A DNA stretch of 64,000 nucleotides, taken from the NCBI GenBank assembly GCA_047495785.1, contig JBLDXI010000013.1:2914001-2978000 (forward strand), in the 5' to 3' direction. Origin of the DNA: Lepidodermella squamata (Eukaryota > Animalia > Gastrotricha). The notes under the pieces are model-generated. The model saw only the letters and a program-made list of their open reading frames with translations. It made no database searches and was not told the origin of the DNA. Position 1 is the first letter of the stretch. Each line of letters opens with the position of its first letter. The position numbers and the translations under genes were made by a program. Below are positions 30,270-38,256 of this stretch, piece by piece.

Positions 30270-32416
30270 ATGTACGGTCTTCTGATAAAAGCCGCCCTGG
30301 CTTACTTGGGGCAGGCGTATCCAGATATAAGCCAAGACGTACTGGAAGAACTCGGCCTGAGTGACCAGCGTGACATGGACCAGTTTCAGATGTACAGTGA
30401 TAAGATCTTCACCCGAATGGCCAAGCTGCTGGCCGATAAGACCGGCGAGCCTGAAGACCACCTTATGGAAGGATTCGGTGGCTATGCCATCGATTTCATG
30501 TGCAAGGTCGGCTACCAGGATTTGCTTTTCAGCCTCGGCCGATCGCTGAGCGACCTCCTTAATGAACTCGACAACCTGCACGAGTATATTCGGATGTCTT
30601 ACCCAAAAATCAAAGCGCCAAGCTTTATTTGCTTGAAGGAATCAGTCGACGGCATCACGCTGCTCTACCGAAGCAAGCGTAAAGGCTTCCAGACCTACGT
30701 CATCGGTTTTTTGAAGACACTGGCAAATAAATTCTACGCAACATCGACAAGTATCGAAATATCGACCACAAGAGACATGGGCGATCGGCATGAGGCGGTC
30801 TACCGGTTGTTTTTCGACAACTCGACCCGCTATTCATCGGCAGCTGACGTCATCATGCGAGATGTTTACTTTAAAAACAAAGTAATTCTGGCGGATACGA
30901 TTTTCGAAATCTACCCGTTTCACATTCTGATCAATGACACGATGGAAATTCAATCTGTCGGCCAGGGTTTGAAGCACTTGTATTCAAAAATTCTACGCGA
31001 AGATTTTTCGTCGCTATTCGAAATTGCCCGCCCTAATGTTGAGCCGAATTTCCGTACGATTCAACATCATTTGAACAATATTTTCGAGATAAGTTGCTTG
31101 CTGACCCCTCGCGGTGGTATGAACGATGAGCCCCAGCAGGGTGCTGGCGGGAATAAGCGGGCGTTGACGGGCCCTCAAGAATCATTAGGCGTCGCAGGGA
31201 AAAGTATGGACAACAACATGATGAAAACCAATGACAGCAACGTTTCGAACGAAGCTGACCTAATTTTGAAGGGTCAAATGATTTTTGTGAGTTTTAATGA
31301 GTTTGACCTAGAAAACCAACGCAATTATTATTTTACAGATTGAAGAATGGAACTGTTTGCTCTTCATCGGCTTTCCTATGTTGGTTGTTCCCGAGCAAAT
31401 GCTTCGAGTTGGCCTTTATGTATCAGATTTGAGTTTGTTCGATTCATCACGTGATTTGATCATGGTTGCGAGTCAAGACATGAGTGACAAAAATCTTACC
31501 CAGGTTTTATTAGTTTGACCTATATAGTTTTTATGCGAATTTTCTTCTCTTTAGAAATTGCTGTCGGTAAAATCTGATGTTGTCGCTGAGGCTTCGCATA
31601 TCACTGAAAAAACCAAGGAAGACTGGCAACGAATTCACTACGCCCTACTACCGTCCACAGTCGCCCAGAAAATGATGCGAGGTGAGCCAACCTAATAAAT
31701 TGAAAAATTTAATTAATTTGATTCAAATTTAATTTTTTAGGTGAACCAGCTTATGCATTGGCTACAACCTTCCCGCGAGCTACAGTAATCTGCGTTGAAG
31801 TCATCGACGAACGATTCGACTCGTTGCTCGGTGAAGTTTTCTCTCACATCGAAGATATTCACCGTGATGCGGCGACAATTTGCGCGAAATACGATTTCTA
31901 TAAGGTGGATGGCCGTTTGACGGAATTCATGATGCTCTGCGGCGCTCCTGATGCCATTTCCAAGGCTGAAATATCCGCCTGCGTTGGGGCACTCGCCTTG
32001 GTAGCTAATGCCAAGCCAGCGCTGAGAGTTGGAATCGCTACCGGCCCGATTTCGGCAGGGGTTGTAGGCGTGAAACTGCTCGCTTACAAGTAATGACCAC
32101 TTCACAAATTTAAGAGTCCAATCCCATTTAATTTTAAACAGGCCTTTCGGCGATACAGTAAAAAATTCCAGACATTTGTCCAACCGCTGCGATCCAAGAA
32201 AAGTGTTGGTTGACGAGGCTACGATGAATGCGTGCTCGAACGACCCCGGGCTAATCTTCGAAGCAGCGTCTGCAGACAAGCAACAGGTGAAATTCGTGAA
32301 TTTAATCGTAAATCACAAAATTTCATAATTTTTCTAAATAGCTACCGCCTCAAATGGTGTGCTATTTTGCGAAGAAGGCATCGAAGCACAGCAGCAAACC
32401 CAAAGACGGAGCTTGA
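30270..32416 (+). CDS. Atypical soluble guanylyl cyclase-like protein (H-NOX, PAS/HNOBA, coiled coil, degenerate cyclase); exons 30270-31286, 31339-31503, 31555-31681, 31741-32089, 32142-32286, 32342-32416
   Basis: MYGLL start, LDNLHEY heme His, YRSKR (YxSxR), LKGQMIF, GLYVSDLSLFDSSRDL, ALLP, RVGIATGPISAGVVG, FGDTV. TATA at about 30210. Confidence 0.88.
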
Positions 32417-32536
32417 GAGACTCTGATGAGGACCTGATCATCCTTGAAAGACAGAATTATATCGTGCAATTATTGTAAAAATGTTCAAGTTGAAGTAAAG
32501 CTTTTGTGCTGTTAATATCCTTCGGACCCAAAATGC

Positions 32537-32932
32537 AAAAACAGGCTCCAAGTGGTTGATATTTTTTGATAAATTCGACAACCACTTGGGAGCCGTTCGA
32601 TTTGGGCCCTCGGGGCAACATGTCCAACCCTTGGCGCTCGGGGGAGAGCGATAGCAGGGCTGCTGCGGACATGCTGAACCACCGGGTGGTTGAGGGCGGG
32701 AGACTGAGGCCTTGAAAGGTTCAGCCGAATTCAGCGAAGTAAGCATGAATTTTCGAAGTAAGCTACATTTTGCGCCAGGATCGAAGGCTGAACCAATCCG
32801 TTACCCACGGGTTACCATGGGACGGATCGGGAGCCTCCGACGGTGTACAGACACCACCTGGCGTCGGCCGAAACAACAGCGTTGGAACTGCTGCTTTAGC
32901 GCTTGACGACATGTGTTGATGTGTCAGACTCC
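32537..32932 (-). ncRNA. Structured ~396-nt Pol III-type ncRNA candidate (possibly 7SK-like)
   Basis: TATATAAA about 30 nt upstream, 5' GGA start, many helices whose G-U wobbles work only on the minus strand, and a terminal hairpin followed by TTTTT. No credible ORF. Confidence 0.6.
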
Positions 32933-32958
32933 GAAAGAAAAGAGGCAAAAACGCCACG

Positions 32959-32966
32959 TTTATATA
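32959..32966 (-). promoter_or_regulatory. TATA box of the candidate ncRNA
   Basis: TATATAAA on the minus strand, followed by a pyrimidine-rich spacer and then GGAG. Confidence 0.5.
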
Positions 32967-33683
32967 GAGAAGGGGTATGAATCATTTAGCGCGATATTGA
33001 TTGTATTAGCCTTTATCAACTGAAAGAGCGTAGAACGTCGCGTGACGGTTGATAACATCAAATGATGCAATATTGCGGTCATAGAAAAGTTCTTACTAAT
33101 TCGATTCCATATTATCATACTTCGAGCGCCCTTTCTAGATTTAGTCTCGTTAAATAATTAAATAAAAATAATTTCCAGCATGGGCGTTTGGCCATATGGA
33201 TCTTTCACTGACCATTAATTATTTGATAATGCCCCTCTGACGCATTTTTGAAAAAAATTATTTTGGTATCCAGGTAGGGTCATTTCAACTAGACAGAAAA
33301 GTTTCGTTTTTTATCTAGCGAATATTCGAGCGAACTTCAAGAGGCTAATAGGAATCCCAGGACCTTGGCACCTTCAGGCACGTTCTACCTCTCAGATCTA
33401 CCAGATACAAGACTACCAGTAAATTGTTACAGAGCTGCTTCAGCTTTCATATAGGCTAATGCAAGAAAAGGGTGTGGCGTTAATTTAACCGATTAAGCTC
33501 ATATTATTTCGCGCACTTAACTTTCTAATCTCCTCATTTCCGGGGTCACCTTTTTGCACGAATGAGACGGGAACAGTTCGGAACACGGAACCAGGCCCGC
33601 CTGATAAGAAGAAACTCATACGAGTCATTCTTTCACCACATCCTCTTTTTTGGAATTAATTATTACACAATAACTTTGTGAAA

Positions 33684-34602
33684 ATGTACAAGCTAGCAGC
33701 TATTGTTGTTTTCGCCAGCTTCAGCCTGGCTGTTGCATTTCAACCCATCAAAACATGCGAAGAGACAGGTGGAGTGTGCGCCAATGATGGAGAGTGCTGC
33801 CCTGGCCTGTACTGTTACTCAGCAACAGGTCTGTCCATCACAAACCATGTTTTAGGACTATAGAAAAACTCTTCTTCATGAGATTCTCATCTTTTAAGGT
33901 GGATTTTCCGACATCCCAATTTTCACACCCGCCAAAATTAAATTAATTTGGGAGACTATTGAACCTTATAAATGCTGGTTTTCATAAACAATTGTTTGAT
34001 CAATTCTGAGTTGTCCAAGACTTCGAGTTTTGGGTAAATTTCCGAGTTTAAATGTTTTAAATCGATGAAATCAAAATGAATAGGTTTAGCAAAAGTCATC
34101 AATCTAAATTTTGATAAATGAAAAATAAGGTCAAAATGCTTATGCCCTATTTATGTCCGATTCATTAAGACTTCAGTGCCAAGAATCGAAGAGATGTTGT
34201 AGCCCGTTAACTTTTACAACCTACGAAATCTAAAAAACCTGTTATTTGATTCTAACAGGTAAATGTAAAAGGAAGTGCATAGCTGGTATGTTCGGTTGCT
34301 TCGACGGCCACGAATCGAAATGCAACGAAGCTGGCGGTCAATGCCAAGCGAACAGCAATTGCTGCCCTGGATTGTTCTGCAACCCCGAGAATAAGTTATG
34401 TAAGAGGAAATGCGAAACTGGCCTTCTGGGATGCGACGATGGCCATGAAACGCAGCAATGTCGCGAAACGGATGGTGAATGCAGCAATGACGGAGATTGC
34501 TGTCCTGGTTTGTTTTGCAACAGTGAAAATGGACGCTGCAAGAGAAAGTGTGTTGCTGGTATGTTTGGCTGCAATGACGGCCATGACGCCACCAGGCCGT
34601 GA
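33684..34602 (+). CDS. Secreted protein with three tandem knottin/ICK-like 8-Cys repeats; exons 33684-33828, 34259-34602
   Basis: Signal peptide MYKLAAIVVFASFSLAVA, then 3x C-x6-C-x5-CC-PGL-x-C-x6-C-KRK-C-x2-G-x2-GC-x-DGH. A phase-1 GT-AG intron joins the two ORFs. Confidence 0.85.
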
Positions 34603-36776: not shown

Positions 36777-36910
36777 AAAACACTCTTTATGATTCGCATG
36801 ATAATTAAAACCAGTAGACTAAAATATATAGCTTTTATTGCACGTCGTTTCGAAATCAGTCACAATTTCATCATCAGGTGAAATGAGTTGGCATGTAAAC
36901 GGAGTTTTTC

Positions 36911-37165
36911 AGAAAATATAAGTCATAGGAATAGATATAATTCAGTAATTTCAATGTGGTTTTTAGATATAACGCCCACGAGAAATGGATGCCAAGGGCC
37001 CCAAATGGCCTAATGATTCATCAGCGGCTTAGTGGCCTCAAATTTCCGAAATTTGCGCCACTAAGCCGTTGATAAATCATTAGGCCATTTGGGGCCCTTG
37101 GCATCCCTTTTCTCGCGAGCAGGCGATCTTTAGTGAATTATATCAATACATATGACTTATTTTCT
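36911..37165. mobile_element. Foldback/MITE-like nested inverted repeat
   Basis: Inner near-perfect palindrome 36979-37115 (ggatgccaagggccccaaatggcctaatgatt...aatcattaggccatttggggcccttggcatcc). Outer imperfect inverted repeats ataagtcata...gatataattca and tgaattatatc...tatgacttat. Confidence 0.7.
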
Positions 37166-37766
37166 ATGAGATAAGTAGACCATTAAAGGTGGATATTTCC
37201 AACATCAGGTGTGAAGTTCAGCAATGACTCAAGAACTCCTCATTCAAAACAAAGCTGCAATAAGCTTGCTTTTCGTCATTCTCAGCGTCGAAATACTAGT
37301 AGAACTCATGGTAGAACTAGCACAAACCAGCATTCCGCCATTGCTACATATCAACGCTTTGAATAGACACTTGAGGGAACTGGATATCGCTGACTTGTAC
37401 GCAGCCAGTGTCGAATCCAACGCATGGTTCTTTCGAAAAACTGCCGTATACTCTAACTGCACAACAGCCAAACCGTAAAATGTCTGAAAGCCGAAAGAAA
37501 AGTATCACGCAGTTCTTTTGAATATGAGGTTTCTCGAGATCGCGCTTTCTCGGCATCGGTTGCAGTGCCAGTCAATCGCATAGAAGAATGGCATAGGCAT
37601 CATCGATGTTTCGGAGAGACACGAGAGAGAAATTGTAATTGTTGATCTTTTAACAAGACCAGTTCAGCGAGTCAAAATTATTGCTTAACTAATAGCTCAT
37701 TCAGTTTTCGCCCAGGCGGTGAGTTACTGAATGAACATCCGAAGTAAGCAAATATTTTGGAGGGCG

Positions 37767-37839
37767 ATTCCTACGGAGGATTCGAACCTCCCACTGTGTT
37801 CAACGATGAACACCGCTCTACCAACTGAGCTAGTAGGAA
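37767..37839 (-). ncRNA. tRNA-like cloverleaf with non-canonical anticodon arm (not a standard tRNA)
   Basis: TTCCTAC-TA-GCTC-AGTTGGTA-GAGC-G-GTGTT-CATCGTTG-AACAC-AGTG-GGAGG-TTCGAAT-CCTCC-GTAGGAA. All four stems pair perfectly and the A and B boxes are intact, but the anticodon loop has 8 nt and no U33. Confidence 0.8.
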
Positions 37840-38256
37840 AATGGCTGCTAAGCAGCAAATTCACGTCACAGTGAAAATTGCTAGCCTGAGCAGCAAAGAA
37901 TGAGAAAAAATGAGCGTATTTATACGGCCTTAGGCTCACCTATAAATAATTCAGACGACTGATGCAATTTTATTCAAAAGGTTGCTTAGTGCGGAGGTGA
38001 GGATTCATTATCAATTCAACGTTAAAAAATGAAACGTCAATACTGAATAACTAAGAAGATCAACCTATTGTTCTCAGTGTGAAAAGAAAAGAAAGAAAAA
38101 ATTCAATAAATAACAATGCCAAATCCAAGTCAGCAAAAGATGATTCCATTCCGTCCTGTTCTCACTTAATTTTTTGAATAACAGTTCAAGCTCAAATTAA
38201 TAATAGGTACCTTATATTGCAATTAGTCGCTTTGAGGCATTATTAGACATCTTGAA

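Follow-up and report, generated by a model that had tools for sequence, protein, structure and literature searches.

A candidate single-copy gene for a large structured RNA, probably lineage-restricted and distinct from 7SK, in the gastrotrich Lepidodermella squamata

Introduction

The 7SK small nuclear RNA (Rfam RF00100 and RF01052) is the closest described counterpart of the locus reported here. The pattern described for 7SK comprises a 5'-3' closure, a GAUC hairpin and conserved ends, and its HEXIM site is placed in the distal 5' hairpin, where a paired GAUC-GAUC is flanked by uridines (PMC10083321). Two 7SK genes are present in Drosophila; the second, snRNA:7SK:94F, was found by profile similarity to 7SK, and its RNA binds HEXIM, LARP7 and Cyclin T (PMC8406779). 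Beyond 7SK, the RNA polymerase III scaffold RNAs (Y RNA, vault RNA, RNase P and RNase MRP RNA, and SRP RNA) are alike in having a compact and stable fold, an end formed by a U-run and a likely ribonucleoprotein role.

A 64,000-nt stretch of genomic DNA from the gastrotrich L. squamata (the window) contains a candidate RNA gene that a preliminary description had taken for either a divergent invertebrate 7SK or a new class of RNA polymerase III transcript. The candidate resembles 7SK, and a 7SK-like family identified here in the same genome, in its length (366-396 nt when the candidate is included), in a TATA-like box ~30 nt upstream, in a terminal hairpin with a U-run and in a body made of several hairpins. 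It also shares the general features of the scaffold RNAs named above, although at ~396 nt it is unlike the Y and vault RNAs, which are ~100 nt long. The sections that follow compare the locus with these systems.

Gene signals and copy number

A TATATAAA box is read on the minus strand at 32966-32959, and GGAGUC begins 26 nt later at 32932. This spacing resembles that of the TATA-like boxes found ~30 nt upstream of the U6, RNase MRP and RNase P genes of the same genome. The 3' end of the candidate RNA is a UUUUU run at 32541-32537. The layout given in the preliminary description, namely the TATATAAA box, GGAGUC, a final hairpin and UUUUU, all on the minus strand, was found in full, and from it we infer a transcript with the following limits.

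32959..32966, minus strand: TATATAAA box, at -34 to -27 from the proposed start; read directly
32537..32932, minus strand: proposed 396-nt RNA, from GGAGUC to UUUUU; fold z-score -9.68; single copy

Searches of the 121-Mb genome with the DNA sequence and with a covariance model of RNA positions 67-200 revealed a single copy of the locus, the model recovering only the candidate locus itself genome-wide. Because the candidate is single copy, its reading as a SINE, a MITE or another dispersed repeat is removed; the many decayed copies that the preliminary description had associated with such an element were absent by both searches. The open reading frames of the region had no Pfam match, and the region was therefore judged not to be protein-coding. 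A scan of metagenomes with the pattern GCTTACTTCG-N6-12-GCTTACTTCG returned at least 120 stretches, none of which was related to the candidate RNA.

The candidate lies next to a soluble guanylate cyclase gene. In single-exon searches, the 357-amino acid first exon of the cyclase retrieved from a large protein collection only distant relatives, at 37% identity or less, and a 111-amino acid exon open reading frame had no protein match. That no cyclase relative exceeded 37% identity in so large a collection indicates that the lineage is poorly sampled.

Other features of the neighborhood were recorded in passing. A tandem array of small cysteine-rich (knottin-like) exons with ~136-bp periodicity, comprising repeat families D1 and D3, occupies 33678-34600 on the plus strand. 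At 36909-37169 there is a long, near-perfect inverted repeat whose 54-nt arms are 94% complementary and nested in 40-nt arms; of the T4-free stretches scanned, none exceeded it in folding energy per base. The first 17 bases of many contigs of the assembly (L022, L024, L026-L028, L034-L036 and L038) read ACACATCTCGTGAGAGT, probably what is left of an adapter or primer that escaped trimming in an amplification-based library.

We consider it moderately likely that the candidate is an independent, single-copy, minus-strand gene for a non-coding RNA of ~396 nt that lies outside all described families and is probably restricted to the lineage of L. squamata.

Fold of the 396-nt RNA

The minus strand of 32537-32932 gave a minimum free energy of -170.3 kcal/mol, as compared with -118.3 ± 5.4 kcal/mol for dinucleotide shuffles (z -9.68), and none of 100 shuffles folded as well. 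A comparison with shuffles had been proposed in the preliminary description, and every helix listed there was present in the minimum-free-energy fold. The fold divides into five segments, four of which were significant when folded alone.

32867..32932, minus strand: 5' segment, RNA 1-66, with two hairpins, UGACACAU/AUGUCGUCA and AAGCAGCAGU/GCUGUUGUUU; z -3.1 alone
32773..32863, minus strand: domain 1, RNA 70-160, a Y-shaped three-way junction closed by CGCCAGG/CCUGGCG; z -6.8
32698..32772, minus strand: central, largely unpaired linker, RNA 161-235, with ~72 nt unstructured; z -1.3
32606..32697, minus strand: domain 2, RNA 236-327, a Y-shaped junction closed by GCCCUC/GAGGGC; z -3.8
32537..32598, minus strand: 3' hairpin, GGCUCCCAAGUGGUUG/CAACCACUUGGAGCC, with an A/U-rich 20-nt loop, followed by U5; z -6.3

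Domain 1 contains a short hairpin and a 26-pair hairpin that includes a GAUC/GAUU pairing; its folding energy is -58.2 kcal/mol, and 46% of the ensemble weight falls in one structure. The layout of domain 2 is the same as that of domain 1, and its closing pairs have a probability of 0.99. The stem of the 3' hairpin consists of 18-19 pairs.

A motif shared with a neighboring tRNA-like RNA

The central linker contains two tandem copies of a 19-nt motif, and a third copy is present ~5 kb away in a second structured region, candidate B.

32754-32772 and 32735-32753, minus strand: two tandem copies of AAAAU-N4-GCUUACUUCG, in the central linker
37740..37758, minus strand: third copy of AAAAU-N4-GCUUACUUCG, in candidate B

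These three matches, all on the minus strand, compare with 0.41 expected in the window, and none of 100 shuffles reached three. Candidate B extends over ~37660-37895 on the minus strand, is single copy and has a fold z-score of -6.4. It includes a tRNA-like domain at 37766-37839, directly upstream of the motif, with an odd anticodon loop and a weak match to tRNA-Sec (E 0.075). Its motif copy is predicted to pair with a downstream UUAAGCAAUAAUUUUG. The candidate and candidate B have a 29-nt block in common, whose score was equaled or exceeded by 8 of 1000 shuffles. Each RNA has a closing stem of 7 pairs, and the motif comes after its 3' strand.

This arrangement bears on an alternative in which the candidate would be a precursor, cut by RNase P/Z-like or Dicer-like activities into smaller RNAs (the Y domains or the 3' hairpin), with a short-lived 400-nt form. 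The position of the motif after a closing stem in both RNAs, and directly downstream of the tRNA-like domain in candidate B, invites analogy with tRNA-linked small-RNA genes, and the length of the 3' hairpin stem together with weak matches to microRNA precursors is consistent with processing. Those matches, to microRNA precursor families at E values of 0.47-9, are the only ones that the 3' hairpin obtains in Rfam and are at chance level. Moreover, neither ARAGORN nor Rfam detected a tRNA-like fold in the candidate, and the stems of the candidate are shorter than those of typical Dicer substrates. Processing of this kind is thus an unlikely, though coherent, explanation.

Two leads on a partner for the motif emerged after several readings. 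If wobble pairs are allowed, GCUUACUUCG can pair with the 5' splice-site consensus AG/GUAAGU. In addition, six of the seven letters of CUACUU(U/C), the loop bound by the 65K protein in U12 stem-loop III and in the U6atac 3' stem-loop (PMC4980772), recur in the motif core UUACUUC; this resemblance may be due to chance. For copy 2 of the motif, the predicted position is a loop of 7 nt with a closing C-G pair, but a hairpin-loop placement of this kind is predicted for only one of the three copies. U12 was not found genome-wide, and the U6atac hits were below threshold and coding-looking; the minor spliceosome may have been lost or may be too diverged for detection.

Predicted duplexes of the motif with rRNA, 5S rRNA, U6, RNase MRP RNA, RNase P RNA and 7SK RNA were no better than those of shuffles, the best nominal duplex (7 of 200 shuffles) involving one 7SK subfamily only. 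Two other genomic sites carrying the complement of the motif lie in ordinary-looking DNA, and no spliced-leader gene pairing with the motif was found in the rDNA spacer. The rDNA unit itself is 8460 bp long (L194, C2:2905600-2914000), carries a 5S rRNA gene in its spacer on the opposite strand and contains two copies of the box ACCACATGCAC(G/A)TGGTCATTGGCGAC.

Variation between haplotypes and runs

Public contigs were compared over 31500-34500. In run X1, a DNA data set probably derived from the sequenced animal itself, 32595-32954 is represented by one full-depth contig with no differences. Elsewhere in the 3-kb stretch, X1 shows 43 variant places in ~2.6 kb (~1.7%), many of them at half depth, the pattern expected of two haplotypes. 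The variants nearest to the candidate RNA are at 32513 and 32955 (position -23), leaving 360-440 nt free of variants. By our own calculation ~6 variants are expected in 360 nt, and the Poisson probability of observing none is ~0.002. A variant-free candidate amid polymorphic flanks indicates constraint; gene conversion between haplotypes could also explain the identity.

No run listed as containing the stretch is on record as RNA. Runs X2 (labelled RNA-Seq, which is a guess, and rated probably DNA, at depth 2) and X3 yielded short contigs that are 90-96% identical across the candidate RNA. By our reading of the loose end of an X3 contig from a relative, the stem of the second 5' hairpin is kept while the loop differs, and one G-U pair is replaced by G-C. 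Such retention of the stem is a hint of structural conservation and not a covariation test.

These observations weigh on the view that the locus is a functionless relic: the remnant of a structured element of mobile or viroid-like type, or a structure that arose by chance and owes its lack of variation to gene conversion. The absence of decayed relatives of the single copy anywhere in the genome, the variant-free tract within DNA in which ~1.7% of places vary, and the identity retained in contigs of the other runs all argue against it, and we regard a relic as distinctly unlikely.

The 7SK-like family of the genome

Genome-wide searches with the Rfam 7SK models gave nothing convincing, the Arthropod_7SK hits being noise in coding-like DNA. 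A 7SK-like gene is nevertheless present at L176:4708-5102 (minus strand; contig C29, near 921.2 kb), in a cluster of tRNA genes with a U6 gene. DNA search revealed a family of seven copies, of which five are near-identical and located on C29 (L185-L189), and two are diverged and located on contig C9.

L190:1504-1869, minus strand: 7SK-like copy on C9, from DNA search
L191:1202-1567, plus strand: 7SK-like copy on C9, from DNA search

Alignment of the seven copies showed RNAs of 366-381 nt with conserved ends and a diverged middle. A closure of 9-10 pairs is formed by a 5' UGUGGAGGCG with CGCCUCCAC just before the 3' hairpin, both elements being conserved. The family has a hairpin of the form UUGAUCGC...CGGC(C/A)GAUC, a 3' hairpin that ends in CUUCUUUU and a tail, CUUCUUUUG. 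Judged by these sequence features, the seven-copy family is probably the 7SK of this animal. Since the Rfam 7SK models miss this family as well, their failure to match the candidate is a weak test, and the lack of any Rfam match is in fact a trait that the two have in common.

Comparisons were also made with the family itself. The local alignment score of the candidate against the 7SK-like family was 19, equal to the shuffle mean (p ~0.5), and global alignment gave p ~0.2. Covariance models of the 7SK-like 5' and 3' domains scored 4.1 bits or less on the candidate (E of 7.5 or more, with filters off). The candidate lacks the UGUGGAGGCG/CGCCUCCAC closure, the UUGAUCGC...CGGC(C/A)GAUC hairpin and the CUUCUUUUG tail. 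Its fold z-score is -9.7, as compared with -1.2 for the 7SK-like family, and it is single copy, whereas the family has seven copies.

The 7SK-like traits that the candidate does show are weak or widely shared. A terminal hairpin with a U-run is a general property of RNA polymerase III transcripts. The two GAUC motifs noted in the preliminary description are present, at RNA positions 105 and 151, but ~1.5 are expected by chance. The first (105-108) pairs with GAUU (135-138) in the long hairpin and has no flanking UU; pairing of GAUC with GAUC or GAUU inside a stem is automatic because GAUC is palindromic. The closure proposed there between the 5' GGAGUC and GGCUCC (339-344) can form, as six pairs, but only at the expense of the base of the 3' hairpin, and the resulting fold is 5.2 kcal/mol less stable than the best one. 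In view of these weak traits and of the lack of similarity to the family, we conclude from the sequence comparisons that the candidate is not 7SK. The identification as a divergent invertebrate 7SK is accordingly abandoned: a separate seven-copy family takes that place, and the candidate is unlike it by alignment and by covariance model.

In a more elaborate version, the candidate would be a strongly diverged second RNA of the 7SK type that would likewise bind HEXIM and LARP7 and sequester P-TEFb; the two 7SK genes of Drosophila provide a precedent (PMC8406779). Like snRNA:7SK:94F, the candidate would be a second structured RNA of ~400 nt beside an existing 7SK, with an atypical promoter; its length, TATA box, 3' hairpin with U-run, GAUC/GAUU pairing in a long hairpin of the 5' half and possible six-pair closure would suit this role. 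The Drosophila RNA, however, has profile similarity to 7SK, and the candidate shows none. With no resemblance to the genome's own family by alignment or covariance model, a GAUC pairing that arises from the palindrome outside any conserved UUGAUCGC context and a closure that is energetically costly, a second 7SK is very unlikely.

Strand, promoter and polymerase

The plus strand of 32537-32932 also folds better than shuffles, with a z-score of -5.22. In the minus-strand fold 14 of 136 pairs are G-U, and 15 G-U pairs are present in the plus-strand fold. The preliminary description had assigned the strand from G-U pairs; these pairs exist, but their number alone is insufficient for the purpose because the plus-strand fold has as many as 15. 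The assignment to the minus strand is based instead on the gap between the z-scores, together with the TATA box and the U-run.

The same evidence addresses the proposal that the structure belongs to the plus strand, as the 3' untranslated region of the convergent soluble guanylate cyclase gene or as part of a read-through transcript. The cyclase stop codon is at 32328, ~210 nt from the 3' end of the candidate RNA, the plus strand does outperform its shuffles and an X2 contig spans 32375-32637, across the U5 site. That run is probably DNA despite its label. Relative to its composition the minus strand has much the greater stability, and only on this strand is the structure framed by the TATA box and by the hairpin with U5. 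A plus-strand origin is consequently improbable.

The U6, RNase MRP and RNase P genes of this genome share the sequence ATATGCAAAT(G/T)AG ~36 nt upstream of the TATA-like box. Allowing up to three mismatches, the corresponding word, ATATGCAAATKAG, was not found upstream of the candidate, whose region from -40 to -75 is polymorphic. The absence of the word does not exclude RNA polymerase III because the 7SK-like and SRP RNA genes are also without it. The promoter word (ATATGCAAATKAG / ATATGCAAAT(G/T)AG) occurs 334 times in the genome, as compared with 3 occurrences of a control, and is also found at loci other than RNA genes; ATATGCAAATKAG is a general promoter element. Internal A and B boxes were uninformative, none in the candidate being convincing. 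Internal T4 runs are absent from its body, which is uninformative given that 34% of shuffles also lack T4. Type-3 RNA polymerase III genes combine an upstream proximal sequence element and TATA box with a terminator made of a T-run; the candidate has the TATA box and T5, and no proximal element was recognized in it. Transcription by RNA polymerase III is suggested by the TATA box and the hairpin with U5 and is plausible on that basis.

Some further observations concern the promoter word and the U6 genes. At some sites with ATATGCAAAT(G/T)AG (L159 and L160; C7, near 266.5 and 268.8 kb), a stretch reading ...CAAAAAUCAG/GUAAA follows ~80 nt later and could represent a short leader-type exon. At least 31 U6 genes are present (L002-L013 and L162-L179; C12, C29 and C32), several of them inside tRNA clusters, and many lie in a repeat unit beside a GC-rich gene for a Gly/Lys-rich basic protein. 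Strongly folding T4-free stretches beside the U6 genes were considered as family members and rejected, being mostly the antisense strand of the basic-protein gene.

Known RNA classes

Rfam searches at the gathering score gave no family match across the window, and a search at E <= 10 over 901 nt around the candidate matched no RNA class save chance-level microRNA precursors. The covariance-model search that the preliminary description had recommended was thus carried out, and the candidate matched no 7SK, Arthropod_7SK, RNase P/MRP or SRP model. RNase P, RNase MRP and SRP RNA are normally each represented by one functional gene family per genome. In this genome the RNase MRP gene (86 bits), the RNase P gene (120 bits) and 22 copies of the SRP RNA gene (160-183 bits) were found elsewhere, and as none of these models matched at the candidate locus, the three identities were rejected. 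SRP RNA genes number at least 22 in total; the two copies that were read (L198 on C55 and L199 on C19) each lie ~75 nt downstream of a tRNA gene.

It is extremely improbable that the candidate is telomerase RNA, for although the size, the multi-domain fold and the open central region would fit, a telomerase template has at least ~8 nt complementary to the telomere repeat, and with TTAGGG telomeres (590 matches to five repeats, and CCCTAA tracts at the left end of the same contig) the longest match of the candidate to (CCCUAA)n is 6 nt, inside a stem and loop, so that this identity was rejected, barring a non-canonical template.

The candidate is therefore probably an orphan, a structured and lineage-restricted RNA that is possibly transcribed by RNA polymerase III. 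Of the earlier proposal of a new RNA polymerase III class, the new class is retained, since no known family fits, and the polymerase has the status of a suggestion.

Discussion

The following minimal model would account for the features of the candidate gene. Transcription would start ~30 nt downstream of the TATA box and stop at U5 after the terminal hairpin, a layout that fits RNA polymerase III, the enzyme that we infer. The folded RNA would comprise a pair of hairpins at the 5' end, two Y-shaped three-way junctions of similar design and a long hairpin at the 3' end, and between the junctions an open stretch of ~70 nt would expose the two tandem GCUUACUUCG copies. Our best guess at a function is that of a stable ribonucleoprotein scaffold in which proteins would attach to the rigid domains and the open center would offer the repeated motif to a partner that recognizes its sequence, be it a protein or a GUAAG-containing RNA. 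The neighboring tRNA-like RNA, candidate B, would share that partner.

A bolder extension, which we put forward as speculation that is unlikely to hold, is that the candidate founds a class of nuclear scaffold RNA that is new, abundant and specific to this lineage. An open platform of tandem GCUUACUUCG copies, with their complementarity to the 5' splice site and their likeness to the 65K-binding loop, would lie between two Y modules of tRNA size, and together with candidate B the RNA could titrate or deliver a splicing-related factor.

The analysis has also located what are probably the real 7SK genes of this animal, which the standard Rfam models miss. Because these lie elsewhere in the genome, the 7SK label should stay out of the annotation of the candidate locus. 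Gastrotrichs are, to our knowledge, almost unexplored at the RNA level. If it is expressed, the candidate would establish a previously undescribed family of small nuclear-type RNA, large and structured, with an unusually clear architecture consisting of two similar three-way junctions, an open motif-bearing center and a partner gene 5 kb away.
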